This document shows, piece after piece, positions 3,827 to 25,559 of a stretch of DNA of 64,000 nt. The stretch is from the sequence record NC_042056.1. The stretch is one strand, 5' to 3'. Position 1 is the stretch's first letter. Each line of letters begins with the position of its first letter. The notes below the pieces were generated by a model. It had not been told where the DNA came from. It saw nothing but the letters and a program-made list of their open reading frames with translations, and ran no database searches. The translations under genes were made by a program, and so were the position numbers.

Positions 3827-5221
3827 ATGGGTCTGTATAGCAAACCCGCACTCGATTTATTGGGGGCGCTCATTAACCGGGACAATCCGGGAGTAAAGAC
3901 TCAGCTGTCGTCGTCCAACATCCTTGTGCTGGGTGGACCATTCACGACCAGTCTGGGCAACAGTGGCCGCAATACCCGTATCCAACTGAACGGGGTTGTG
4001 GGTTCTGGCGTCAACGGAAAGATGGAATTTTTCTACGATCGTCTGAACTTAGGGGATTTGTTCAAGAACATCACCATTGTCTTTAACGGTGATAACAAGT
4101 CGACGAAACTCAAAGATCTGCTACCGGCGTTGAATGCCCAGTATGGGTTAAACTTGACGGAAGCTGATTTAGTCACGCCTGACGCAGCTCTGGATTACGG
4201 ATATACCGCAACACCCGTCACTTTTACCATGGCAGCGACGAGTCTGGCGTACCGTGGGAGTTTGACGGCAACGTGGTCACGCAAACCGGCCGGGGTTTAT
4301 CCGAAGTCTGGGCCGGGTACAAAAACGCTGCTGATGGGGAGTCTGCAAGAAGGCTACTTTGGCGTGGTGTCGAAAGAAGAGATGATGACATCCGGGGAGT
4401 TCTACGCGAACTTCTTTGATGGCAAAACGGTGAGCGGGTCAGGGGTGTTGGTTAACAACACGCTGTTCTGGTTGAAGTTTGCGCTGGATGGAAAGTTTGT
4501 CTTTGTCCCGAGCCACAACATGATTTCGAACATCAGCTGGGATACCTTGAACGCGTTTGGTGCGGCGAATGCCGATGCTAAATACCCGATGTTCGTGCAA
4601 AAAGACGACGACCAGTTCTTTTTCCAACTGCGATTACCACGATTCTCCACCACGCTTGAGCTTCCGCCGGATCGTACTGACCCTACTTCGGATGCGAATC
4701 GTCTGTTCAACAAGGTGCATAAGCAGTCGTACGGTAACGGGGCGTGGGCCGCGTTGACCACCGTGGATATGGCAAACGCCTTTGTCTGGTGGAACAAGCG
4801 AAATGATACCACGGCACCGTTCCCCGTTTACGTCTCGGCGTTTAACCAAGTCTCGGTAAACAATGCCGCATCCGCCAGTCCACAAAACTGGCGACCAGTG
4901 TTGGAGTTGGTCGATGCGGCTGACTATTTGATGCCGATGCGTAACCTCCAGGCAAAATTGGAAGTACCGGTACGGAACTTTGGGTTTATTCTCACGAGTA
5001 TCATCGACTCGAGTACGTTGCAGGCGATGAAAAACATCTCGGCAACACTGGCACGCGGTGTACCGGCACCGGTGTTGTACCGCCCAACGGCGAACATCTT
5101 CAAAGCAGCGCAAGACTTCCGAGCGACGAATCCGGTACGGTCGTTTGCATTCCGGTTCACAGCGACGTATGACAGGCGGACTGATTTAGCCACCACCAAT
5201 GGCGAACTGAACGGCTTTTAA
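3827..5221 (+). CDS. Virion structural protein, module 2 L subunit
   Basis: Paralog of 493 and 7153 (GRNTR..GSG..GK..FFYDRLNL); ends NGELNGF. Confidence 0.7.
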   Translation: MGLYSKPALDLLGALINRDNPGVKTQLSSSNILVLGGPFTTSLGNSGRNTRIQLNGVVGSGVNGKMEFFYDRLNLGDLFKNITIVFNGDNKSTKLKDLLPALNAQYGLNLTEADLVTPDAALDYGYTATPVTFTMAATSLAYRGSLTATWSRKPAGVYPKSGPGTKTLLMGSLQEGYFGVVSKEEMMTSGEFYANFFDGKTVSGSGVLVNNTLFWLKFALDGKFVFVPSHNMISNISWDTLNAFGAANADAKYPMFVQKDDDQFFFQLRLPRFSTTLELPPDRTDPTSDANRLFNKVHKQSYGNGAWAALTTVDMANAFVWWNKRNDTTAPFPVYVSAFNQVSVNNAASASPQNWRPVLELVDAADYLMPMRNLQAKLEVPVRNFGFILTSIIDSSTLQAMKNISATLARGVPAPVLYRPTANIFKAAQDFRATNPVRSFAFRFTATYDRRTDLATTNGELNGF

Positions 5222-13880: not shown

Positions 13881-13920
13881 AGAAAAAAAAGAAAAGCGAC
13901 CCACCCCCGAAGGAGTGGGT
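13881..13920 (-). terminator. Intrinsic terminator closing the radical SAM operon
   Basis: Minus strand ACCCACTCC-TTCG-GGGGTGGGT followed by a long T-run. Confidence 0.8.
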
Positions 13921-13925
13921 ACGAC

Positions 13926-14582
13926 TTAGGCTACACCGTTATCCGCAGCAAGCTGCTTAACTGCGGTGAAGTCTTTTTGTTCCGTGAGGATACGGATGCG
14001 TTGTTTCAACACAGACATGACCATGTGCAGGTCATTGTCACGCGTGATGATTTCCGCATAGAGGGCTTTAACGTCCTCCACCGTCCACGGCTCGATAGGC
14101 TCGTTGTTCAGCGTCATCCAGTACATCGGGTCAACCCCGGACTGCATGTAGCTTTGCATCGATTCGCGCGACTTCTCGTCAGCTTGGAACGTCTTGTCAC
14201 GGAAGGTAATGGGTGCAAACCGTTCCGCGTTATACTTGTCGTTCAGTTTCGGATAAATCGCATTGACTTCCTGATAGAGGTAGTTCTCCGTCGAGGTCAG
14301 CGCGGTACGTACGTGGTCTAAATCAATCTCCAGCACGTCAGCAATAAACTCTTTGGTTTTCTTCATCAGGAATTCAATTTCAACCGGTGACAGGTCAAAG
14401 CCTTTGAGTTTCTCGCGGGCTTTCTTGTCACTCATACCGTTAATCAGATGGTAGTGCAGTAGCAGGCAGAACCCGATACGGTTTTCCATCTGGTCTTGGT
14501 ATTCTTCCACGTAGTTACCGTAGCGGTCGATACGCGTGCCCCGTTCGAAATAACGGGCTTTTATTTCGTCGTTACTAAGCAT
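13926..14582 (-). CDS. Protein with C-terminal DUF4376-like (tail fibre-associated) domain
   Basis: ITFRDKTFQADEKSRESM..WMTLNNE..V.ALY..K.RI pattern in the C-terminal half. Confidence 0.55.
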   Translation of the reverse strand: MLSNDEIKARYFERGTRIDRYGNYVEEYQDQMENRIGFCLLLHYHLINGMSDKKAREKLKGFDLSPVEIEFLMKKTKEFIADVLEIDLDHVRTALTSTENYLYQEVNAIYPKLNDKYNAERFAPITFRDKTFQADEKSRESMQSYMQSGVDPMYWMTLNNEPIEPWTVEDVKALYAEIITRDNDLHMVMSVLKQRIRILTEQKDFTAVKQLAADNGVA

Positions 14583-15118: not shown

Positions 15119-16427
15119 TCGAGGCTCCGAGTTCTAATTTAAGTTTATCTGCTTTCATGCGGTCACGCACGCAGCTCGCACAGTAGCACATGGATTTATC
15201 GTGCAGGTCGGCGACATTCGTGGTACCGGTTTTCTGATACCAGTATTCGGACACCAACAATTTCGCGGTCGTCCAACCACACTGGCGTCGCTCAGCATGG
15301 TACTCTTTACGCGCTTCCAGCTCGCCGTCACCGTTCTCGTAAGAAGCAGCCGCACAGCTACCGCACGAGTGTTTCATCGGGCAGCCTAAGCAGGTAGACG
15401 GGTAGTTGGTGTACTGCGTCTGAATTTCGTTCAGTAGTTTGTGACCGTCAATGTTCACAATCTCACGCCCACGCAGTTCTGCTACCGCTGAACGGGTGGT
15501 TACGGTTGACATGAAGCGGTTACAGCCGTAAATCTTACGGTCGAAGCCAAGACAGGTCATGTGGGTCAGCGTACCGCAGTAAGGACGTACACGGTCTGGG
15601 TGCAGACGGGTTGCTTCATCGTCCAGCAACTTCTGACGCCAGTCCGGGTCCCATGTCGCCATGAAGTCCAGCCCATCAGGAATGATGTGGGTCAGGATGT
15701 TACGTGGTGACTTGTGGTAGCCGTTGTCGACCCAGTAATCGATAACGTCAATCATCTGGTTTGCGATACCCAGAGCCATATCACGCGACAGAATGTCTTC
15801 GTACGTGACGTTACCGGAGATGGTACCACCGCCCGTTTCTTTAATCAGGTGAATCATGCTCTCGCCGTAACGAGGCAGGGTCTCACCGGTAAAGGTGGCT
15901 TTGATACCGAGTTCTGCAATACCGACAGATTTCAGGTATTGGTAGCCGCGCATCGCCTGCTCGTACGAGCCTTCACGCGAAGTGGTGAAGATACGATAGC
16001 GGTCGTGTACTTCTGGCAGACCATCGATGGACACACCAATCGACAGACGGTCTTTCCAGCGTTCAATGATTTCTTTGCTGATAGGACGGTCGAACAAGGT
16101 GCCGTTGGTAGAAATAGAGAATACGTACTGGCGGTTGTCGCGCGCCGCTAACTCTTCGGCTGTCTCAAAGACGGCTTTCAGAATCTTCGGCTGCATAAAC
16201 GGCTCACCCCCGATGATGTCGATAATGATTTCGGCATCTTCGATGTGACGGTCGCGGTCAAAACACGCATGAATAAAATCGACAGCGTCATCCACTTTGT
16301 TGTTGCGCGGATACTTACGTTCGTAGCAATACGAACAGTCGAGATTACAAGACAGGTTAGTTACGACCTGATACGTGAGTGTGGGGCGCTGTTTACGCGT
16401 CTGCGATGAAGATCGTTCTTCACTCAT
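15081..16427 (-). CDS. Radical SAM/SPASM peptide maturase (CXXX-repeat target type)
   Basis: CNLDCSYC (CX3CX2C), GGEP, STNG, SIDG..HDRYR; SPASM-type Cys set YCG..C..GCNRF / CLGC..CGSC..C. Confidence 0.9.
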   Translation of the reverse strand: MSEERSSSQTRKQRPTLTYQVVTNLSCNLDCSYCYERKYPRNNKVDDAVDFIHACFDRDRHIEDAEIIIDIIGGEPFMQPKILKAVFETAEELAARDNRQYVFSISTNGTLFDRPISKEIIERWKDRLSIGVSIDGLPEVHDRYRIFTTSREGSYEQAMRGYQYLKSVGIAELGIKATFTGETLPRYGESMIHLIKETGGGTISGNVTYEDILSRDMALGIANQMIDVIDYWVDNGYHKSPRNILTHIIPDGLDFMATWDPDWRQKLLDDEATRLHPDRVRPYCGTLTHMTCLGFDRKIYGCNRFMSTVTTRSAVAELRGREIVNIDGHKLLNEIQTQYTNYPSTCLGCPMKHSCGSCAAASYENGDGELEARKEYHAERRQCGWTTAKLLVSEYWYQKTGTTNVADLHDKSMCYCASCVRDRMKADKLKLELGASNEVIADSQFYSA

Positions 16428-17317
16428 TTGATTACCTCATTGCGATGTTTGCGAGCGTGGATCGTGCGATTGATGTAACGGTAGGCTTCTTGCCCAATGA
16501 CTTTCGCCAGCATGTTACAACCGCTATCGATTTCCATCTCGACATCCATCGTGTAGCCGATAGACGCATCGGAGTCCAGACGAACCAGACCGCTGCACGC
16601 GTTGCACGACTGCTCAAAGAACTTGCTGATGGAGAACCCAGTTGAGCCATTGTTCATGACATTCAGGCGTTCAATCTGGTCTTCCATTTTGTTGTAGCCG
16701 AACATGAAGTTCATCACCAAATCTTGGTTCAGAGGTTTCTTCATGCGGTTGTCCAACAGCAGCGTCATGTCTTTGAAGCCGTAGTGGTGGAGTGCGCGGT
16801 GTAAGTCCAGCAGGTCAGTGTGCCAATATTTATCAGCCAACTGCTCACGAGTCACCACGGCCCACGTATGGACGTTGTTCAGCGCAGCCATCACTTCGAA
16901 GGCTTCGAATGCACCATCTTCAACGACACGCCAGAGCGGACGTTCGCTCTTTTTGTATCCATCGAACGACACACAGATACGGTTAAACTGTTGCAGCATC
17001 GGGAGATGTTCCAGACGCATTTTCAGACCGTTCGTGTACAGCTCGTGAGTGAGATGCGGGTATCGGGCTTTGACTTCGGCCAGCAATGGCTCAATCTTGC
17101 GGGTTGCCATTAACGGCTCACCACCCGTCCAGTTCATCCCTTGTAAAGTCGGGTACTTCTCCAGTTGTTCAAACAGCGCTTCACGCTGAATTTCCCGACC
17201 AACATCTTTTGTGTCCATGTAATACGCTCCGCCGCAGAAACTACAATCCAAATTACACTTGGACGTCGTCACTATCGACAGCTCGGTAGGGGGACGTATT
17301 TGTGGTGCATCGGTCAT
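16424..17317 (-). CDS. Second radical SAM protein (short, possible Twitch-like C-terminus)
   Basis: CNLDCSFC, TGGEPL, YTNG, SFDG; C-terminal CNAC..GC. Confidence 0.85.
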   Translation of the reverse strand: MTDAPQIRPPTELSIVTTSKCNLDCSFCGGAYYMDTKDVGREIQREALFEQLEKYPTLQGMNWTGGEPLMATRKIEPLLAEVKARYPHLTHELYTNGLKMRLEHLPMLQQFNRICVSFDGYKKSERPLWRVVEDGAFEAFEVMAALNNVHTWAVVTREQLADKYWHTDLLDLHRALHHYGFKDMTLLLDNRMKKPLNQDLVMNFMFGYNKMEDQIERLNVMNNGSTGFSISKFFEQSCNACSGLVRLDSDASIGYTMDVEMEIDSGCNMLAKVIGQEAYRYINRTIHARKHRNEVIK

Positions 17318-17335
17318 TGCAGATTGCTCCAGTTT

Positions 17336-18214
17336 TTAATAGATCGCGAAAAGGGGGTCGTCCTCAAACTTCGCGCCCACATCCAGAAGGAAATCGGAGT
17401 GGTAGGCATCGAGTATTTGATTCAGAACAGCCTGACGGTCGTTAATCCGTTTAAGATCATCGAGTGTCACGCTTCGCGACTTGATGTTTGAAACTGCCTT
17501 TTCTTCGTCAGCTGTTAAGGAAACCTTCGACAGAAGGAAACTTACCAGCTTGCTCAGGTCAGCCTCGGTACCCGGTGCTTCACCGTAACGCAATTGAACC
17601 AAGAACTGCATCCACGGTTTGCGGATACGGCGACTGATTTCATGTGGATCGGTAATCGCTTCGAACTGCCCATCTACCGCATTCCAGCGAAACTTGTAGC
17701 TATACGCCAGTAAGTCAGCCAGACAATGGATACCGAGCGTTTCATAACCTAAGATGTGATGGTATTTTTCCACACCTTTATATTCTTCCGTGCCGGTCGG
17801 TACTACGGTGTACCAGAACGGATTAGAAGACGGGTAGTCCCAGCTCCACTCGCGACGAACCATGGGAATGACGTCCAAATCCGCAAACGGCGTGAAGATC
17901 ATTTCCAAATCCATCGAGTGGTTCAGGACTGCATCAGTAAAGAAATACTTACCGTCAATCAGTCGGCCACTGGCGTTCAGCTCGCCTTCATTAAACTTCA
18001 CATGCTGAACAGTGTGCTTACCGATGGAGTAGGTATTCTCTTCGGTGTACTGCTTACGTGTAATATCCCGCCCACGTACCTTAGGCCATTCGCCTGGCAG
18101 CATCGAGATAAGGCGTACTTCGTCAGCGATGTGTGCTTTCACACTGTCGTACGACGAAATGTGTAACGGGAAATTTTGCGTCGTGCGGTACGCCAAATGG
18201 AGGTCGTTCTTCAT
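17336..18214 (-). CDS. Hypothetical protein between precursor peptides and radical SAM genes
   Basis: 292-aa ORF with AAGGA SD, co-oriented in the operon. Confidence 0.65.
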   Translation of the reverse strand: MKNDLHLAYRTTQNFPLHISSYDSVKAHIADEVRLISMLPGEWPKVRGRDITRKQYTEENTYSIGKHTVQHVKFNEGELNASGRLIDGKYFFTDAVLNHSMDLEMIFTPFADLDVIPMVRREWSWDYPSSNPFWYTVVPTGTEEYKGVEKYHHILGYETLGIHCLADLLAYSYKFRWNAVDGQFEAITDPHEISRRIRKPWMQFLVQLRYGEAPGTEADLSKLVSFLLSKVSLTADEEKAVSNIKSRSVTLDDLKRINDRQAVLNQILDAYHSDFLLDVGAKFEDDPLFAIY

Positions 18215-18232
18215 GGTTTCTTTATCCTTACT

Positions 18233-18442
18233 TTATCGGTTACCCGCGCCGTAACTGCACCCACCACTGCACGACCAGCTACAGCTACCGTTGCAGTTAT
18301 AATGCGAGAGTGGAAGCCCAGCAAGGTTGTTGGTCGAACTGACCGTGCCGCGTGTGGCGATATAGTTATTGGCCTGTGCGGTCGTGATGTAGCCTTCGAC
18401 GTTCTGCACCCGATCGCGAATGTTTTTCAATGAGATTGCCAT
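18233..18442 (-). CDS. CXXX-repeat peptide 1 (short, 4 Cys)
   Basis: Leader MAISLKNIRDRVQNVE; core CNGSCSWSCSGGCS; GAGGA SD. Confidence 0.8.
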   Translation of the reverse strand: MAISLKNIRDRVQNVEGYITTAQANNYIATRGTVSSTNNLAGLPLSHYNCNGSCSWSCSGGCSYGAGNR

Positions 18443-18463
18443 AGGTCCTCACTCGATAGAGTT

Positions 18464-18856
18464 CTATCGACTGCCTGAACAGCCAGAGCATCCCGTACAA
18501 CTTGAACTACAGGAACCGGAACAGTTACCGGAGCATGTACCCGAACAACCGGAGCACCCACCCGAACACGAACCAGAACATCCTGAGCACCCACTGGTAC
18601 ACCCAGCAGTACAGCTCGACGAACATGAGGAACCGCAGCCCCCTGATGCCGAACCGGAACAGCCACCTGAACAGCTAGAGCAACCCCAGCTACAGGTTCC
18701 GCCGCAATCGTAATGAATACGTCCTTGGCCGCCGAATAAGTCGACGTTATTGGTTGCCTTATTACGGATGTAGGTTTGTACCCCACCTTCCGTTTTTAAG
18801 GAGTTCGCTTCGATCACAGCAATGCGATCCGCGATGTTTCGTAAGTTGATAGCCAT
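18464..18856 (-). CDS. CXXX-repeat peptide 2 (20 Cys)
   Basis: Leader MAINLRNIADRI; Cys/Ser/Gly CXXX/CXX core; GGGAG SD. Confidence 0.85.
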   Translation of the reverse strand: MAINLRNIADRIAVIEANSLKTEGGVQTYIRNKATNNVDLFGGQGRIHYDCGGTCSWGCSSCSGGCSGSASGGCGSSCSSSCTAGCTSGCSGCSGSCSGGCSGCSGTCSGNCSGSCSSSCTGCSGCSGSR

Positions 18857-18865
18857 TGTTTCTCC

Positions 18866-19255
18866 CTACTGTGGACCAGAGCAACCAGAGCAACCGGTGC
18901 AGCTGGAAGAACACGACCCGGCGCAACCACCGCCACACTTACCACTGCACGAAGACGCACAGGTACCTGAGCAACCTGAACAACCCGAACACCCACCGCC
19001 GCAGTTAGAAGAACAGCTACCCACGCACGTAGAAGTACAGGTTCCTGCGCAGCTGGTACAGCTTGCAGAACACCCGTTAGAACACGACCAGCTACAACTG
19101 CCGCCACAATCCAGACGGGAGGGAGACCACCCACTGAACGAGTCCGCAGCGTTGTAAGCTTTCGATGCAACCTGCCCGTCTACACGAGCCCCGGTAGCAT
19201 AGTTTGCTTCCACATTGTTAACGCGGTCGCGTATGTTTTTCATTGAAATCGCCAT
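18866..19255 (-). CDS. CXXX-repeat peptide 3 (21 Cys)
   Basis: Leader MAISMKNIRDRVNNVE; CXXX/CXX core; AAGGA SD. Confidence 0.85.
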   Translation of the reverse strand: MAISMKNIRDRVNNVEANYATGARVDGQVASKAYNAADSFSGWSPSRLDCGGSCSWSCSNGCSASCTSCAGTCTSTCVGSCSSNCGGGCSGCSGCSGTCASSCSGKCGGGCAGSCSSSCTGCSGCSGPQ

Positions 19256-19271
19256 ACGTTTCCTTTGTCAA

Positions 19272-19310
19272 TAAAAAAATGAGGACGCTGCCATAATGAC
19301 AGCACCTCAT
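19272..19310 (-). terminator. Imperfect terminator/attenuator between the tail gene and the peptide operon
   Basis: Minus strand ATGAGG-T-GCTGTC-ATTAT-GGCAGC-GT-CCTCAT followed by a T-run. Confidence 0.55.
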
Positions 19311-19320
19311 GTAATAAGTG

Positions 19321-20526
19321 TTATCGTGAACCCGCTTCGGCTTGTACGTCGTCGCGAGAAGTCAGGCTGCTGTTGACGTGTACTGCCGCCTGAACCACAC
19401 CGCCGTACTGCTTGTGGAGATAGTTCGGGTGTGGGTTATCTGCGTTAACGTGGTTCTGGAGATTCTGCGACAGGGTGTTAATGGAGTTCTGCAATCCAGC
19501 AACTTGCTGTTTCAGTGCATTCAGCTGACCAGAGAGATCCTGAATCTGCTGCTGCGTATCGGAACCGGCGGATTCCAAATCACTGATGCGCTGCTTGAGC
19601 CCATTGATGACTTGGTTCTGGTCATTGATCATCTTCTGGAGTTGTAACACCAGAGAGTTCAGGTCGGCCTGTTGTAACGCCGCCTTTTGGTAGTTCAATG
19701 CCACCGAATTCAGTTGGTCATTCCACGAACCGAGTGCACTGACCACCGCATCGATACGCGCACCGAGTGCTGTGTCCGCTGCTTTCAAATTACCGATGTC
19801 AGCGAGGACAGCGTTAATGGCAGTCTGAACCGTTTGAATCAGCGCGCGAATTTCGGTTTCAGTGAGACCGTTCGCCTGATGAATATCCAGTGCGTGAACA
19901 TTACCTTTGGCATCGATGTGCGATTGTAGCGCCGCCATCATCTGGGTTTGCATGTCAGACATGGCTGCCAGAATCTGCTGGAGCTGAACTTCGTTACCGG
20001 AGTTAATCGCATCGGTCATCAACGCGAGTTGCGTAATGATGTATTCGAAACCAAACAGGTCGCCGAGGTCTTTAAAGGCCGGAGCCGCTGCAAAGGTATC
20101 CGGGACATTACGCAGGTCAGCGAAGTCAACTTTGCGGTCTTCAAGGTTGGCATCAGCCAACGCCTGTTTAATCGCAGAGATAACCGCCGACTGTGGGCCA
20201 CCGACAACCTGTGCAAGACAGACGATATCGGTTGGGATAGCCGGGTTAGTGACGACCACACCCATACAGATTTCGCGGTTCTTAGCAAGCTTCATGTACG
20301 CCGGATGGATGTAAATCAGCTCGTAGTCGGTACCGCGTTTATAAATGGTGTTGGGTTGATTGGCAGGCCGCATACGGAACGTATCCGCAAAGAACGGCCC
20401 TGCTGGGAAAGCGAACGCACGGTTGACCTTCCCCCCACCTAACACAACCGGGACATTGACCGCGTTACTGGACGCAGCCCCTGTCAGGTCAAGTGGGTAT
20501 TGAAATAGAATATCTGGCATGGCCAA
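19321..20526 (-). CDS. Virion/tail-fibre-like protein with long coiled coil
   Basis: N-domain YPLD..GPFF..GTDYEL shared with the three upstream paralogs; heptad-rich middle; NPHPNYL fibre-like end. Confidence 0.7.
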   Translation of the reverse strand: MAMPDILFQYPLDLTGAASSNAVNVPVVLGGGKVNRAFAFPAGPFFADTFRMRPANQPNTIYKRGTDYELIYIHPAYMKLAKNREICMGVVVTNPAIPTDIVCLAQVVGGPQSAVISAIKQALADANLEDRKVDFADLRNVPDTFAAAPAFKDLGDLFGFEYIITQLALMTDAINSGNEVQLQQILAAMSDMQTQMMAALQSHIDAKGNVHALDIHQANGLTETEIRALIQTVQTAINAVLADIGNLKAADTALGARIDAVVSALGSWNDQLNSVALNYQKAALQQADLNSLVLQLQKMINDQNQVINGLKQRISDLESAGSDTQQQIQDLSGQLNALKQQVAGLQNSINTLSQNLQNHVNADNPHPNYLHKQYGGVVQAAVHVNSSLTSRDDVQAEAGSR

Positions 20527-20567
20527 ACTCCCTTAGTGAGACGTCCTTGTCTCGACGTGTTAGATGG

Positions 20568-23500
20568 TTACGGCAACTTAGGCATAAGATTGACCGTCAG
20601 TTTTGACGGGGTGACCGTTCCGCCGTAATAGTTGACCCCGTTGCCGATGTACAACGCGTTGTCGGCAATAAGCATGGGTATCGGTTGGCGGAAGATGACA
20701 TCTCCATGAACAATCGGGAAATAATCATCGATGGAAACACCTGCTGGCATGGCGACTTTATAAACATCAAGCACACCACCAGTGATACGCCCCGCCGCAC
20801 CCTGTACGTTCGTTATGGCACGAATGGCCACAGTAGCAGCATCGGAGATATAGAACACCGTCGCTGTGCCGTTATCCACGTTGGAGACACTGAACGCAGC
20901 GAACGCGGTGGTCTGACCCCCGTTGATACCATTAAACACGAATGTGTTTTTGACCCCCACCTCGGCAGCAAGTGTGACCTCAGCCAGTGCAGAAGAAAAC
21001 GTTGCAGAAACATCGAGGTTGGCGTTGGTACATCCAATGGTGCCGGAGCCCAAAGAGTAACCACTCTTCAATTTGATTTTCACCGTCGGGGTCGACGGGG
21101 TAATCTCCACAATCATTTTCCACGCAATCGAGATGACAGCCGACATCCCCGGAATACCCACCAAATACGCATTGTCTACATCAGAAGCCTGACCAAAGTT
21201 GGCACCCTTCATCGTGAACTTCTTGTAGTCTTTAGGCAAGGTAGCGACCGGCGCATCCCGCAGCAACTCGATAGGAACCTTGTGGCTTTGAGACGCGAAG
21301 ACCGGGCCAATCTGCGACATATCCAGATACCCATCACCGGTAGCCGCCGGAGCAGAAAGGGGTTGCTTACGCAATAGCCCCAGTCGCGAAAGCCGCGCTT
21401 CACTGTCCACATTCACATCGTGGCTGTAGACCGTGGCGGTATGCTCCGCCAACTGTTTCAACTCGCCCAAGCGTTTCACTTTTGTGAACTCAGACGACAA
21501 GATACGCTGACTGTCGGTGACTACCGTCCCGATAAACAACCGGGTATCCGTATCGGGCATTTTCTGCGTCAAAAGCTGGTATTCCGGTTTGCCGTTCACC
21601 ACCGCCGCGTGCATGTAGAACGTACGGTTTTGGTACGCACCGGGGAACAACGTCTTGAGGTTCTGGTTATACGCATCCAACGTGTAATAGTCGGAACCAA
21701 ACCGTAAGCTCTCAGACTCGGTGATGTACAGCTCCCACCCTTCTGCGGTTTTTACCCCAGCAACGATTGCAACATTCCCCGCAGGGGTGTAGTTTGTCAC
21801 CCCTGCCGCAACAAAGTCGTTCGGTGGTGCGCTTGGGCCTGCGAAATAAGACGGTGAAATCACCTGCCCGTTTGACCGCAGCATTCGCTCCCCAACAAAC
21901 GAAAGGATGGTAGCATAGTTGTAAAACGTGCTGCCGTGCACCCCCGCCTTCGTCGCCGTCAGCTTACCTCCGTTCAAACTGAAAATCAGCTCAAGGTGGT
22001 ACGCCGCGGATGACCCCACGACCTGCCGAATCATGAAGTTCGGCAAGTGCATGATGCCCGTACCGTCACCTTTCTCGTAGAAGATTGGTTGGCCCATTCT
22101 GCTGCTGTGCCCAGAATAGTTGGTATTCTGAATGAGTTGCAGGTTGCTGTACGTCGCGATGTTGGTGTATACAACGTCAGCTGTGGTCGTGACCAGCTGA
22201 ACAACCCCGTTCACGACGCTCGGGTAGATTTGGAACGTAACATTCCCTAACCGCTTATTGCCGTTATAGAGTGCGTAGTACGACATTTGTGCAATCCAAA
22301 TCGGATTGGCATCAAGGGGTCGAATCGCCCACACGGAAAAGAGGAGGTTAATCGGGTTGGCAATGCTGTCCGCCACCTCACCTGCCGGTGCTGCCGCTTT
22401 TAAGGCCGCCGTTATCTTGTTCCATGTGTCGGAGGACAACGTAAGGGTATCGGCTTTTGGTACCGCACCCACGGCCTGGTACCGCTTCACACCGGGACCG
22501 TTCCAATACGCGCCGTTTAACTTACCCGACTGGAGCGTGGATGTCGCACACCACGTCATGTCTGCCAAAGCGTAGTAATCGTCAACCGAGAAATTGCGGC
22601 GCACGTTACTCGGCCCTGCGCCCAAGTACGCGGGACCGTATGTTGTGTTTGGGTCTACCTCGACATACACCGCGCTGTTGGCGTTGGCGGGACTAAACAG
22701 ATACGCATTATTGCCCAGATACACCGGATGGGATTGACCGACAGAATACACCGAGCCAATACCGCCCGTGAACTGCCAGTTCGCCAGAGAGGTGTAACCG
22801 CTTTTGTGGTCTCCTGCGATAAAGTCGTAGAAGTCCGCGTCCATTGTCGAGTGTGCTAACCCGTTGGGGAGGGTGTCCTGAGACTGATCGTAAATAGACC
22901 ATGCACGTTGGCCAACCCCTTGGAACACCCGCATGCGGTTATCAGCATTGCCGTACGGGAACCGAACTTTCCAGCCTGCCTCTTTGAGCTTTGTCCCAGT
23001 GGCAAGATACACATCGTCCGCATCGATTTTGAATGGGAAGATATCTGCATTATCCAGCGAGACCGTCAACGTATCCATGTCAATCTGGAACGAAGTCGCC
23101 CAAGTGAAACGGCCATACGCGTCATCAGGGCTCAACAATAACAGGGTGCTCAAAATACCTACCCTGGTCATGTTCTCGCGCTGCGCTACCGCATACGTCG
23201 CGATGTTGTGTGCGATGTTGCGCAGGTTACCCCAGCGTACTTTACCGGCCTCGGTCACATAGGTGGTGCCCTGTGTCGCAGGGTCGGTCGCATCAGTGTC
23301 TGTGTTAGCGCGCAGCAACACTGAGATACCGTTGACGCTGTTCCCCCCCTTGAGAGCAGCAGGGGTGTAAACCATCTTGTCCCCACTGACTGACCCTACT
23401 AACGCATAGACACTGTACTGGGTATTGGTCAATTCCAGATGAAGAATGTAGACCTTCCCTTTATACACAATGGTTTGTTCGCGTGTCTGATCGCCGAGAT

Positions 23501-25559
23501 AGCCACTGACCGTGCCGTTCGCGTCGAACGAGGCAGGGAATTCACTCCGATACACCTGTTTGTGTTTGGTGTAGTTCAGCGTTCCTTCCAGCATGACTGT
23601 GTAGAAATATCCGTCGCTGCCTAAACAGACAAGTGCCGCATCGCCTGACGCAACCAGTGTGAGTAGCCGGACACCGGGATACTTACTCATTCCCGCTGGG
23701 TGGTATGGGAACGACGTCTGCTGCTCCCCTGCAATTGACCCATTGTTGTTTACACGGGCATAGCCGTAGTAAATGCGATCAGTGTTCGGCAATCCGTCGT
23801 TTGCATTGCGTAACAGGTAAACGATGTCCCCTTCCTGCTTGACTGCCCCCAACCCTTTCCAGCTCAGCTGTTTCGCAAAACCGGCAAAGTTCCCCACCGT
23901 TGGAATAGGCAGGAACCCACTGTTACCGTACGAGGCACCCCCAGTCGTCCACGACGGCAACAGACCGTCCAACACGTCTTTGTACGTATTAAGGCGCTGT
24001 TGTACGTTATAGCCCTGCTTTGACGTCACCACTTTGTTCGTGGTGGTATCAATCGCATCCCACAGTTGCAACAGACCTGCGTCCGTATCAGACGCCGTTG
24101 GTACGCCCGTCAGGTCGGCAAACGTGTGCGTGTGGTTTGCCAGAGCCTTATTTGCCAACACCGCACGAATGGCGTTGGTCAACGGTTTCTCAGCAGGCGC
24201 GGTGTTGTTGATGTTACCCACACCTAAATCGGCGGTCGTTAAGGTAAGGGACTGTTTCGTACCGTCATCAATGAACTTCTTCCCGTTAATGGTGTACGTG
24301 TTGTCCACGTAATCATCCAGCGTCTTTTTCAGGACGTTAACAGCATACTGCGAAATCGCGGTACCCGAAGAAATATTTGCAGACAGGTTGGTGATAGCAA
24401 ACAGCCCCGGCACTTTGTCAGTTGCCGTGGGCAGTTGCGCGTTCATGGTCAGTGGAGAAGACTGCTTCGCTGTACCGAATACCTTGATGGTGTCGGTTGG
24501 AGAAAAGTAAGCGTTCCCCGGTAAGAGTTTTACTTCGGACAGGTACAACGAGACCATGTCCGGTGTGACCAGATATGCACCGTTAAAGATGGGTGCCACT
24601 GCGCCGTTGAGCACATAAGCCGTGTTCAGCCCCGAGCCCAACTCAACCCCCACACCCCGTTCGTTACTGTCTGCATCAGCAGTGATGTTGATAGCACGGG
24701 TGGTGGTAATAAGGAACTTATCGCCTTGCAGGGTGATAACATGGCTCGAGTCGGCGGTACGGAATGTCAACGCACCGTTATTCAGCACCTTGAGGCGACC
24801 ACGCAGTTCACCAAGCACCACAGGCATCAGGGTATCGATGTGAGCTTGCTGAATGCCGTTTGCTTTCATGATAGCGACTAACTCATCCAGCGTTTTACCG
24901 AATGCCTTCGTCGAGTCTACCGCTTTGGTCAGTACCTTTAACGCCCCAATCTCATCCGCAGTGTATTGGTGTGCGTTTTTGATACGATGGTGGCTGTACA
25001 TGTTGTCGTCGAAAATCTTTTTACCGTTGGCAAAAATCAAATCGGTGACCTCGGCGTACGCCACATCCATATCGCCTGCCCGCTTAATCAAACCTTGACG
25101 GATATCATCCAGCGCTTTCACGACTTCATCGCGGAGCAGGGCTTCATCTAAGTTGGCAGGTGGGTCAATTGCAGGAACCACTGGTGCATAACGCATCAGT
25201 TCAGACCAGTCGGTGTTACGCGGGTCTTTGATGTCCTCTTTCACCAAGAACTTGCCAATCTCGGTCTGTGGTACGCGGTATTCGCGACCAATCGAATAGA
25301 TCGTGTAGTCAACAGAGGTGTCTCCGTTAATCAACATAATCCCGCCGTAGATTTGGTCTTTCATTGCGACAGCGGCTTCTTTATAATAGTAGCCGAGGTA
25401 GTAATCCAGACCCTCAATGAGCTTCACGCCTGCGCTGTTTTTCAGCTCAAGCCCGGTACGGAAGAACGGCCCCTCAGGAGGGATGACCACATTGTATTTG
25501 TTCGGATATGTGGTCGTCAGTAGCGTACCGGTAAATTTGGCTACGTTCGTGCTCGCCAT
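20568..25559 (-). CDS. Large tail-fibre-like virion protein (1663 aa)
   Basis: Shared GPFF/DY N-domain, DLGVGNINNT..KP and HTH/AT..G..L fibre motifs, long Gly/Thr/Asn-rich beta-type C-terminus. Confidence 0.7.
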   Translation of the reverse strand: MASTNVAKFTGTLLTTTYPNKYNVVIPPEGPFFRTGLELKNSAGVKLIEGLDYYLGYYYKEAAVAMKDQIYGGIMLINGDTSVDYTIYSIGREYRVPQTEIGKFLVKEDIKDPRNTDWSELMRYAPVVPAIDPPANLDEALLRDEVVKALDDIRQGLIKRAGDMDVAYAEVTDLIFANGKKIFDDNMYSHHRIKNAHQYTADEIGALKVLTKAVDSTKAFGKTLDELVAIMKANGIQQAHIDTLMPVVLGELRGRLKVLNNGALTFRTADSSHVITLQGDKFLITTTRAINITADADSNERGVGVELGSGLNTAYVLNGAVAPIFNGAYLVTPDMVSLYLSEVKLLPGNAYFSPTDTIKVFGTAKQSSPLTMNAQLPTATDKVPGLFAITNLSANISSGTAISQYAVNVLKKTLDDYVDNTYTINGKKFIDDGTKQSLTLTTADLGVGNINNTAPAEKPLTNAIRAVLANKALANHTHTFADLTGVPTASDTDAGLLQLWDAIDTTTNKVVTSKQGYNVQQRLNTYKDVLDGLLPSWTTGGASYGNSGFLPIPTVGNFAGFAKQLSWKGLGAVKQEGDIVYLLRNANDGLPNTDRIYYGYARVNNNGSIAGEQQTSFPYHPAGMSKYPGVRLLTLVASGDAALVCLGSDGYFYTVMLEGTLNYTKHKQVYRSEFPASFDANGTVSGYLGDQTREQTIVYKGKVYILHLELTNTQYSVYALVGSVSGDKMVYTPAALKGGNSVNGISVLLRANTDTDATDPATQGTTYVTEAGKVRWGNLRNIAHNIATYAVAQRENMTRVGILSTLLLLSPDDAYGRFTWATSFQIDMDTLTVSLDNADIFPFKIDADDVYLATGTKLKEAGWKVRFPYGNADNRMRVFQGVGQRAWSIYDQSQDTLPNGLAHSTMDADFYDFIAGDHKSGYTSLANWQFTGGIGSVYSVGQSHPVYLGNNAYLFSPANANSAVYVEVDPNTTYGPAYLGAGPSNVRRNFSVDDYYALADMTWCATSTLQSGKLNGAYWNGPGVKRYQAVGAVPKADTLTLSSDTWNKITAALKAAAPAGEVADSIANPINLLFSVWAIRPLDANPIWIAQMSYYALYNGNKRLGNVTFQIYPSVVNGVVQLVTTTADVVYTNIATYSNLQLIQNTNYSGHSSRMGQPIFYEKGDGTGIMHLPNFMIRQVVGSSAAYHLELIFSLNGGKLTATKAGVHGSTFYNYATILSFVGERMLRSNGQVISPSYFAGPSAPPNDFVAAGVTNYTPAGNVAIVAGVKTAEGWELYITESESLRFGSDYYTLDAYNQNLKTLFPGAYQNRTFYMHAAVVNGKPEYQLLTQKMPDTDTRLFIGTVVTDSQRILSSEFTKVKRLGELKQLAEHTATVYSHDVNVDSEARLSRLGLLRKQPLSAPAATGDGYLDMSQIGPVFASQSHKVPIELLRDAPVATLPKDYKKFTMKGANFGQASDVDNAYLVGIPGMSAVISIAWKMIVEITPSTPTVKIKLKSGYSLGSGTIGCTNANLDVSATFSSALAEVTLAAEVGVKNTFVFNGINGGQTTAFAAFSVSNVDNGTATVFYISDAATVAIRAITNVQGAAGRITGGVLDVYKVAMPAGVSIDDYFPIVHGDVIFRQPIPMLIADNALYIGNGVNYYGGTVTPSKLTVNLMPKLP

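Follow-up and report, generated by a model that had tools for sequence, protein, structure and literature searches.

Three cysteine-rich peptide genes in an operon of phage Machina

The DNA considered here is a stretch of 64,000 nucleotides from sequence record NC_042056.1 (hereafter the window), of which positions 16000-21000 correspond, with 100% identity, to positions 140000-145000 of Erwinia phage Machina (NC_042056), a jumbo myovirus with a 241.6-kb genome. The subject of this study is a set of three successive open reading frames (ORFs), labelled gp177, gp176 and gp175 in RefSeq and described there as hypothetical proteins, which encode peptides composed of a conserved N-terminal segment and a Cys-rich core and which share an operon with two genes for radical S-adenosylmethionine (rSAM) enzymes. 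A first description, made from the letters alone (the sequence-only reading), had presented them as paralogous, precursor-like peptides with a leader of about 50 residues and graded Cys cores; its ORF coordinates, N-termini, first-Cys positions, Cys counts, core start and shared 15-mer were all reproduced on recomputation.

The first Cys lies at residue 50 in gp177, 51 in gp176 and 50 in gp175, and all three cores open with C(G/N)G(S/T)CSW(S/G)CS; the total number of Cys residues is 21, 20 and 4, respectively. Over 80 residues in gp177 and gp176, successive Cys residues are spaced by four (the majority) or three positions, as in a tandem CXXX repeat, and the lone spacing of eight residues, in gp176, corresponds to a position at which Cys is replaced in register by Ala. 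Ser, Cys, Gly and Thr make up the cores, along with a few Ala and Asn residues and one Trp; none of the three contains any Asp or Glu. The N-terminal segments are 33-42% identical to one another (E 1e-4 to 1e-8), in agreement with the claim that the three genes are paralogous, and match nothing else within the window. All three peptides fall in phrog_6085, a family without an assigned function. Both gp176 and gp177 contain the 15-mer GSCSSSCTGCSGCSG without any change of residue, yet 12 of its 15 codons differ and Ser is encoded by both the TCN and the AGY families, which indicates that the repeat is maintained at the protein level.

The genes from gp177 to gp170 are separated by gaps of 9-21 nucleotides or overlap, and the block is bracketed by two strong terminator-like hairpins (Table 1), which together suggest a single transcription unit. 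A Shine-Dalgarno-like site (AAGGAAA, GGGAGAA and GAGGA, respectively) lies 5-8 nucleotides 5′ of each peptide ORF. The upstream hairpin is directly followed by TTGACA and then by the ribosome-binding site of gp177. Because the two rSAM genes are encoded in the same operon, the description of the peptides as precursor-like is upheld; scans with Pfam, NCBIfam and PHROG recognised no protease, transporter or immunity gene in the operon. The same-strand upstream neighbours are gp178 and then the giant proteins gp179-gp181, and a gene annotated as a tail assembly chaperone, gp167, lies near the operon. The similarity of gp179 to SPN3US gp168 is that of its C-terminal half; SPN3US gp168 is described as a baseplate/fibre tail protein related to phiKZ gp131 (PMC5105663). 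The syntenic counterpart of gp178, SPN3US gp167, is paired with the structural phiKZ ORF134 in the published SPN3US homologue table. At the other end of the operon, gp171 has neither a PDB nor a Pfam match and no annotated counterpart in the distant modules described below, and no solved relatives were found for gp171, gp170 or gp178.

Table 1. Genes and transcription signals of the peptide operon and its upstream neighbours (aa, amino acids; pLDDT, predicted local distance difference test)
Feature	Position in window	Strand	Characteristics
gp177, peptide type A, 129 aa	18866..19255	(-)	N-terminal segment of about 49 aa, C..CSW.C, 21-Cys CXXX/CXX core; phrog_6085, E 1e-48; orthologues in 21/21 loci
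gp176, peptide type B, 130 aa	18464..18856	(-)	50-aa N-terminal segment, 20-Cys core, one Cys-to-Ala position; phrog_6085, E 1e-50
gp175, peptide type C, 69 aa	18233..18442	(-)	Same N-terminal architecture, short 4-Cys core; phrog_6085, E 4e-29; short in every relative
gp174, conserved accessory protein, 292 aa	17336..18214	(-)	phrog_8030; AlphaFold2 pLDDT 86
gp173, short rSAM protein, 297 aa	16424..17317	(-)	Pfam PF04055, 2e-11; CX3CX2C, three conserved C-terminal Cys
gp172, rSAM/SPASM peptide-maturase-like enzyme, 448 aa	15081..16427	(-)	TIGR04115 126.6 bits, PapB 125 bits, both below cut-off; no N-terminal RRE
gp171, uncharacterised, 185 aa	14561..15118	(-)	Overlaps gp172 stop; phrog_7988; co-operonic in jumbo-phage clade only
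gp170, DUF4376 domain protein, 218 aa, last operon gene	13926..14582	(-)	PF14301, 7e-10; weak tail-fibre PHROG matches phrog_1807/2837
Terminator-like hairpin and T-run between gp178 and gp177	19284..19306	(-)	Upstream boundary of peptide operon
Terminator-like hairpin after gp170	13899..13920	(-)	Downstream boundary
gp178, coiled-coil virion structural protein, directly upstream of peptides	19321..20526	(-)	phrog_2163, 1.5e-110; syntenic with SPN3US gp167
gp179, giant baseplate/fibre protein, SPN3US gp168 homologue	20568..25559	(-)	32% identity, E 6e-74

Conservation and selection among jumbo phages

The three peptides were compared across 21 related jumbo-phage loci of several genera, which provide 17-19 distinct sequences per peptide type. 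SPN3US, CR5 and Kwan carry the same three ORFs in the same order in the same slot, and further loci came from a scan of viral contigs. The ordered A-B-C trio (long, long, short) occurs in all 21 loci, and the majority-Cys columns are invariant (21/21 in type A, 20/20 in type B). Synonymous differences are saturated (proportion of synonymous differences, pS, 0.75-0.80), and the ratio of non-synonymous to synonymous proportions, pN/pS, is 0.3-0.4 in both halves of the peptides. The sequence-only reading had attributed the shared repeat to purifying selection on the protein rather than to DNA slippage, and had proposed that dN/dS and the conservation of leader and Cys register be compared across homologues. 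The codon differences, the invariant Cys columns and the pN/pS values obtained at saturated pS all confirm that attribution, and the register of types A and B is preserved wherever the trio was found.

The notion of graded Cys cores did not survive this comparison. Type C is short in every relative and has 2-5 Cys residues in all phages, and so represents a conserved, separate class and not a step in a series of decay. The suggestion in the sequence-only reading that the 4-Cys peptide could be a cap, a decoy or a minimal substrate found no support here. The Cys-to-Ala position of type B is common to the Machina, SPN3US and phiEaH2 groups, and Cys is kept there in the CR5 and Kwan types.

In tblastn searches the N-terminus of gp177 matched 48 records, those of Erwinia, Salmonella, Escherichia and Proteus phages and one entered under Enterobacteria, and gp172 matched 67 records. 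A word-indexed protein search with the same N-terminus returned a single 74-aa protein, probably because gene callers miss or mis-frame these ORFs. Several records illustrate such annotation. In SPN3US (locus L002, 4130-5159), where the three ORFs lie at 4130-4522, 4533-4937 and 4953-5159, peptides A and B are unannotated, and SPN3US_0166 reads through peptide B in a different frame; in Kwan (L004, 4127-5172) the annotated gp184 reads through A in another frame and gp183 is on the strand opposite B; in CR5 (L003, 4145-5172) CR5_157 likewise lies on the opposite strand. Of the three peptides, only C is correctly annotated in Kwan and CR5. Many further records, among them those of phiEaH2, Caitlin, Asesino and of SPFM and SPLA phages, have no annotation under the tblastn match. 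In the well-studied genomes of SPN3US, phiEaH2, CR5 and Kwan, two or three conserved genes are thus missing or mis-framed.

These alternative frames raise the question of whether the peptide ORFs are genes at all or by-products of a repetitive, GC-structured tract of DNA, on which other frames are open too and were the ones chosen by the annotators of SPN3US, Kwan and CR5. The probability that they are such by-products is negligible. Each ORF has its Shine-Dalgarno site, the same peptide stretches are written in different codons, the Cys columns are invariant, pN/pS is low at saturated pS, profile relatives exist across distant phages, and the alternative frame SPN3US gp166 is missing from the published homologue table, the rows of which run from 165 to 167. 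The codon, 21-locus conservation and selection results refute this explanation, and the reality of the genes is far above chance.

The same SPN3US table lists homologues of gp163-gp165 in PhiEaH2 and CR5 and none in phiKZ, and pairs gp167 and gp168 with the phiKZ structural ORFs 134 and 145. Within the SPN3US-like lineage, the peptide module is therefore an insertion into a fibre/baseplate block that is itself conserved. Two metagenomic jumbo phages (L006, 6001-7790; also L007) show a rearrangement in which peptide genes A and B flank the short rSAM gene (303 aa), and which ties the enzyme still more closely to the peptides.

The radical-SAM enzymes and gp174

Both gp172 and gp173 match PF04055 and contain the CX3CX2C motif, and thus have an rSAM core. 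Among 24 homologues of gp172, C27, C31, C34 and seven further Cys residues are invariant; these further residues, together with a profile alignment that spans the SPASM region of CteB, identify a SPASM domain, and three of the homologues are named in their source records "radical SAM protein with 4Fe4S-binding SPASM domain". The homologues of gp173, one of which is found in every module examined, share its motif and its conserved C-terminal Cys residues; since gp173 has only three of these, it does not possess a full SPASM domain. The annotated starts of SPN3US gp164 (L002, 6091-7005) and CR5_154 (L003, 6109-6984) lie too far downstream and exclude CX3CX2C, which the full ORFs contain. The counterparts of gp172 and gp174 in the Salmonella phages SPFM20, SPFM15 and SPFM8 (P0085, P0099 and P0104; also P0167-P0171) cover only 7-17% of the query in BLASTP despite strong scores with hidden Markov models (HMMs), which suggests frame errors in those assemblies.

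The closest solved structure to gp172 by sequence is CteB, to residues 105-430 of which the family profile aligns (E 4.9e-35). The protein starts at the rSAM core, residue 24 being aligned with CteB residue 104, so that the core and the SPASM domain are present and the N-terminal RRE domain of CteB, the recognition element of enzymes that act on peptides made by ribosomes and modified after translation (RiPPs), is without a counterpart. The best NCBIfam matches are TIGR04115 (126.6 bits; cut-off 350) and PapB, NF047865 (125 bits; cut-off 340), followed by a long list of thioether and other peptide maturases; judged by these profiles, gp172 is a distant relative of the CXXX-repeat-target and PapB thioether maturases.

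The model of gp174, a confident one (pLDDT 86, predicted template-modelling score 0.81), is alpha/beta in its N-terminal part and helical in its C-terminal part. Sequence searches of Pfam, NCBIfam and PDB gave no match for this protein, and a fold search of PDB and BFVD returned no relative besides its orthologue, so the fold is apparently undescribed. Among the fold hits, in a search of limited sensitivity, there was no PqqD/RRE-like match, and a role of gp174 as an RRE or a protease, which was considered, is unsupported by the family and fold searches.

In bacteria, the relatives closest to gp172 (23-30% identical over most of the protein) have as neighbours CXXX-repeat proteins or, in metagenome-assembled genomes (MAGs) of Firmicutes, CXXX peptides of 62-94 aa that conform to the classical RiPP type. 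A contig search with the gp172 family profile was swamped by the generic rSAM pattern: the relatives that it returned were at most 30% identical (36-37% over short partial segments), and the Deferribacter and Campylobacter loci described below were not recovered. In Candidatus Termititenax aidoneus (L026, 3405-7167; similarly L027 and L028), a 667-aa protein consisting mostly of CXXX repeats is encoded upstream of a gp172-like rSAM gene and near a gene for a FliI/type III secretion-type ATPase, which looks like a cellular, possibly flagellum-associated, use of the same pair of substrate and enzyme.

With Cys making up about one-quarter of the core residues, the peptides might instead be unmodified metal- or iron-sulfur-binding proteins, serving as metallothionein-like stores or scaffolds that feed the rSAM clusters or form metal-bridged fibre tips, with the rSAM enzymes acting elsewhere. 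Metal binding has been suggested for the archaeal analogue CrpA, the function of which is unknown, because its gene cluster is up-regulated on pyrite (PMC13692751). We consider this explanation improbable for the phage peptides. Pfam yielded no match to them even at E<=10, and neither metallothionein nor any other family was recognised; the peptides co-occur strictly with a maturase-type rSAM/SPASM enzyme whose relatives flank CXXX targets; and metal binding leaves the conserved Trp and the junction motif ahead of the first Cys unexplained.

The same Cys-repeat module on tail fibres of other phages

The identity of gp172 homologues drops from at least 49% in jumbo-phage contigs to 39% or less, and the more distant homologues sit in tail modules, in which the Cys repeats form the end of a fibre. 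Such fibre ends, with the junction motif, the C..CSW.C start and the CXXX repeats, are found in distant jumbo phages and in P2-like, lambda-like and other prophages. The AT-rich viral contig L021, of 213 kb, encodes a fibre-like protein of 568 aa that ends with GGQPPDFYTCGGSCSWSC and about 100 residues of CXXX repeats, and rSAM genes follow. In a Deferribacter abyssi prophage (L023), a 302-aa fibre encoded a few genes downstream of a GpJ-like tail-tip protein ends with NADQLGGQAGSYYRCSDCSWTC and repeats, after which come a 250-aa gp174 homologue (BLASTP 3e-12) and rSAM proteins of 263 and 385 aa. In a P2-like prophage of Campylobacter pinnipediorum (L024), a 384-aa protein with a Phage_tail_fib N-terminus and a Cys-Ser-Gly repeat end is encoded between the baseplate J/I and the sheath/tube genes, followed by a 250-aa protein in the position of the fibre-assembly chaperone and by two rSAM genes. 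The same gene set accompanies two further fibres, one of 429 aa near an integrase gene and one of 494 aa on a 228-kb contig, where a T4 gp13-like gene is also present. The fibre is followed by two rSAM genes in all five modules whose neighbourhood was read, and an HMM built from jumbo-phage gp174 alone detects the accessory homologue in three of these five distant modules (L023, L107 and L024). A related rSAM gene is also found with DUF2612, Phage_tail_fib and a 248-aa Cys-repeat protein in a Ruminococcaceae prophage, and a Phage_tail_fib gene is present in the L029 module. In L021 (6385-7100 and 7885-9303), the short rSAM gene is split into two ORFs by one interruption, either a sequencing error or a real break, and a further 472-aa protein has a second copy of the domain.

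A search of 1.84 billion representative proteins with a profile built from the three window paralogues gave 120 matches at E<=1e-3. The C..CSW.C motif occurs in 45 of these and stands late in the protein in 31 of the 45 (proteins of 116-549 aa); in 28 of the 31 the repeat ends 2-11 residues from the C-terminus. Ahead of the first Cys, fused and free forms agree in their position-specific preferences, namely N/D at -14, A/S/T at -13, L/F at -10, G at -8 (71-79%), Q at -7, Y/H at -3, Y at -2 and R/D/N at -1. Profile alignments with the fused proteins begin at query position 5-10, so that the whole "leader" aligns inside the fused fibres, immediately upstream of the Cys repeats. It thus has the look of a part of the fibre that is kept and not of a RiPP leader that is discarded. 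All 25 fused proteins scanned match phrog_6085, which marks it as a fibre C-terminal domain. Among the 25 families listed for these proteins, every functionally named PHROG is a tail, tail-fibre, tail collar fibre or spike family, and since the co-matching families span many different PHROGs, the domain has been combined with many different fibre shafts. A second class of Cys-repeat proteins, starting with C-x3-C-x-G-[LMFY]-C, comprises 35 representatives of 120-1785 aa with mostly C-terminal repeats (P0192-P0291, e.g. P0211, P0219 and P0236).

The sequence-only reading had offered two roles for the N-terminal segment, that of an enzyme-recognition leader and that of a trimerising coiled coil that docks the Cys-rich tip onto a fibre. 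The alignment of the segment inside tail fibres favours docking most; recognition by the enzymes through the same segment is compatible with it. In the classical RiPP form of the former role, the 50-aa leader would guide the rSAM enzymes and be removed, and the cross-linked cores would be released at lysis as diffusible products, for instance an antimicrobial, a signal or a metal chelator. The arrangement of leader and core in three paralogous precursors beside an rSAM/SPASM gene, the CXXX peptides of 62-94 aa beside related genes in Firmicutes MAGs and the thioether precedents of PapB and CteB all speak for such a pathway. We nevertheless regard it as unlikely, since the operon has no recognisable protease, transporter or immunity gene, gp172 lacks an RRE and the fold searches with gp174 revealed nothing RRE-like, the entire "leader" is matched by a homologous internal segment of fused fibres, and the module is located inside the tail gene blocks of several unrelated kinds of phage.

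The C-terminal position of the repeats on fibres also allows a transient role, in which the Cys-repeat domain, with or without modification, would be an intramolecular or trans-acting chaperone or nucleation tag for fibre folding that is cleaved or left behind and is absent from the mature particle. Established fibre chaperone domains also lie at fibre C-termini, the gp174 homologue of the P2-like prophage occupies the chaperone slot, and gp167 is close to the Machina operon. This role seems slightly less likely still than a released RiPP: invariant Cys residues over saturated synonymous divergence, together with two dedicated rSAM enzymes, would be a heavy investment for a discarded part, and family scans recognised neither a cleavage motif nor a protease domain.

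A proposed role in the adsorption apparatus

Most likely, the peptides are not antibiotic-like but belong to the adsorption apparatus, as parts that enzymes have cross-linked. Their genes are real and conserved, they form an operon with relatives of peptide maturases, and the same module is fused to fibres elsewhere. More specifically, gp177, gp176 and gp175 are probably detached fibre-tip modules that are cross-linked by the rSAM pair, and the "leader" of about 50 residues would be a fibre segment that is retained. The module would consist of a fibre segment of about 45-50 residues with the junction motif N/D-A..L.G(Q)....YY-R/D, the C..CSW.C start and a CXXX/CXX run composed almost only of Cys, Ser, Gly and Thr. 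The peptides would be made late, from their own operon, together with the maturation machinery of gp174, gp173 and gp172. The enzymes may then remove hydrogen from residues of the core and bond the sulfur of Cys to carbon, with the loss of 2 Da per thioether; because the cores contain no Asp or Glu, the acceptors would be Ser, Thr, Gly, Asn or Ala. A flexible Cys/Ser/Gly tail would in this way become a compact, redox- and protease-resistant cross-linked rod or ladder.

The N-terminal segment would be kept and would act in assembly, possibly through an A/B/C trimer that mirrors the homotrimeric end of a fibre, and would dock to a baseplate or fibre protein encoded just upstream (gp178 or gp179); gp178, the immediate neighbour, is a candidate docking partner. 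The segment may also be the handle recognised by the enzymes or by gp174. The thioether chemistry, the retention of the N-terminus, the A/B/C trimer, the docking, the presence in the virion and the stoichiometry are inferences. A wider form of this proposal, which we advance tentatively and hold to be somewhat less likely than not, is that unrelated kinds of phage (jumbo phages, P2-like and lambda-like prophages and one whose fibre has a weakly T7-tail-fibre-like N-terminus) build a thioether-laddered fibre tip by rSAM chemistry of the RiPP type, and that the module was split into a heterotrimeric A/B/C end-piece in the SPN3US/Machina clade.

Several observations weigh against the fibre-tip interpretation. 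The combination of several short paralogues with a conserved N-terminus and a variable Cys core beside rSAM enzymes is also the classical RiPP layout. The score of gp172 is far under the NCBIfam curated cut-offs of every named maturase family, so that its reaction cannot be predicted, and two of the five distant modules contain no accessory homologue that the jumbo-phage gp174 HMM detects. For gp176, the monomer model (pLDDT 43) was uninformative and was discarded. The literature searched contains no proteomic or transcript data for the peptides, the ORFs of which are absent or mis-framed in the SPN3US annotation. Finally, a history of gene fission in which gp178 was the former shaft of the peptides was considered and rejected: gp178 has no similarity to the shafts of the fused fibres, and a simple fission is accordingly not supported.

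If the fibre-tip interpretation is correct, the post-translational radical chemistry of peptide natural products is part of the building of an adsorption organelle in some phages. On the wider proposal, the tips would form a new class of virion structure, one cross-linked by enzymes, and would represent a structural, rather than a natural-product, role for CXXX-repeat maturases. The phage modules would provide this orphan maturase family with a concrete biological setting and many natural substrates. The fibre-tip interpretation would also change how the fibre tips of these phages should be modelled and sought in proteomes, because modified, Cys-rich and nearly trypsin-resistant pieces would be invisible to standard proteomic workflows. 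No paper in the literature searched links phage fibres, Cys repeats and rSAM enzymes or mentions these ORFs, an absence that is not in itself proof of novelty.

Comparison with known systems

Among the known systems close to the phage module are the CXXX-repeat rSAM target systems (targets TIGR04114 and TIGR04117/04118; maturase TIGR04115), in which, as in Machina, CXXX repeats of small residues adjoin an rSAM/SPASM enzyme. These systems were reportedly first described in a 2011 paper, and we know of no reaction determined for the TIGR04115 family apart from that of PapB. TIGR04115 is the best NCBIfam match of gp172, yet at 126.6 bits against 350 the protein lies outside the family. The same holds for the substrates: the window peptides score 11.5 and 8.7 bits with TIGR04114 (cut-off 20) and 12.8 bits with TIGR04118 (cut-off 35), and the fused fibre of L021 just reaches the TIGR04114 threshold. 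The phage module differs from the CXXX-target systems in its pair of rSAM genes, its conserved junction motif, its C..CSW.C start and, in many cases, a gp174-type protein, and also in its place on or beside tail fibres.

In the PapA/PapB system of Paenibacillus polymyxa, which produces the ranthipeptide freyrasin, an rSAM/SPASM enzyme likewise acts more than once on a single substrate, at CX3-spaced motifs. In the links made by PapB, the partner of Cys is Asp or Glu (PMC9413430), within CX3D/E motifs; the Machina cores contain neither residue, so PapB chemistry is impossible there, and the score of gp172 with the PapB family (125 bits against 340) does not make it a member. Binding of the leader to an RRE domain is assumed for PapB (PMC9413430), whereas gp172 has no N-terminal RRE, and the product of PapA is a small peptide and not a fibre domain. 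CteB, the enzyme of the SCIFF system (PDB 5WGG/5WHY), has an rSAM core and a SPASM domain in common with gp172, and the N-terminal RRE is found in CteB only; the SCIFF substrate is a peptide of about 45 aa with six Cys residues.

Two systems act on proteins. In the QhpC/QhpD system of quinohemoprotein amine dehydrogenase, the rSAM/SPASM enzyme introduces cross-links into a small structural subunit, which remains part of a protein complex. The match of gp172 to the QhpD model TIGR03906 is weak (65.5 bits), and the system differs from that of Machina in that the links are to Asp/Glu and in having a single substrate with few Cys residues, no repeats and no viral context. In CrpA/CrpB/CrpC of Methanococcus voltae, reported in 2026, a SPASM rSAM enzyme installs ranthionine cross-links on the Cys-repeat protein CrpA, and a CrpA paralogue shares an N-terminus of about 47 aa ahead of its C-terminal Cys repeats (PMC13692751). 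CrpC belongs to TIGR04463 and has an RRE, whereas gp172 scores 57.1 bits with this model against a cut-off of 525; the repeats of CrpA are 17-residue units with C-X-X-Q/D and their context is cellular, whereas that of the Machina module is viral. CrpA is the closest functional precedent for the modification of a Cys-repeat substrate of protein size.

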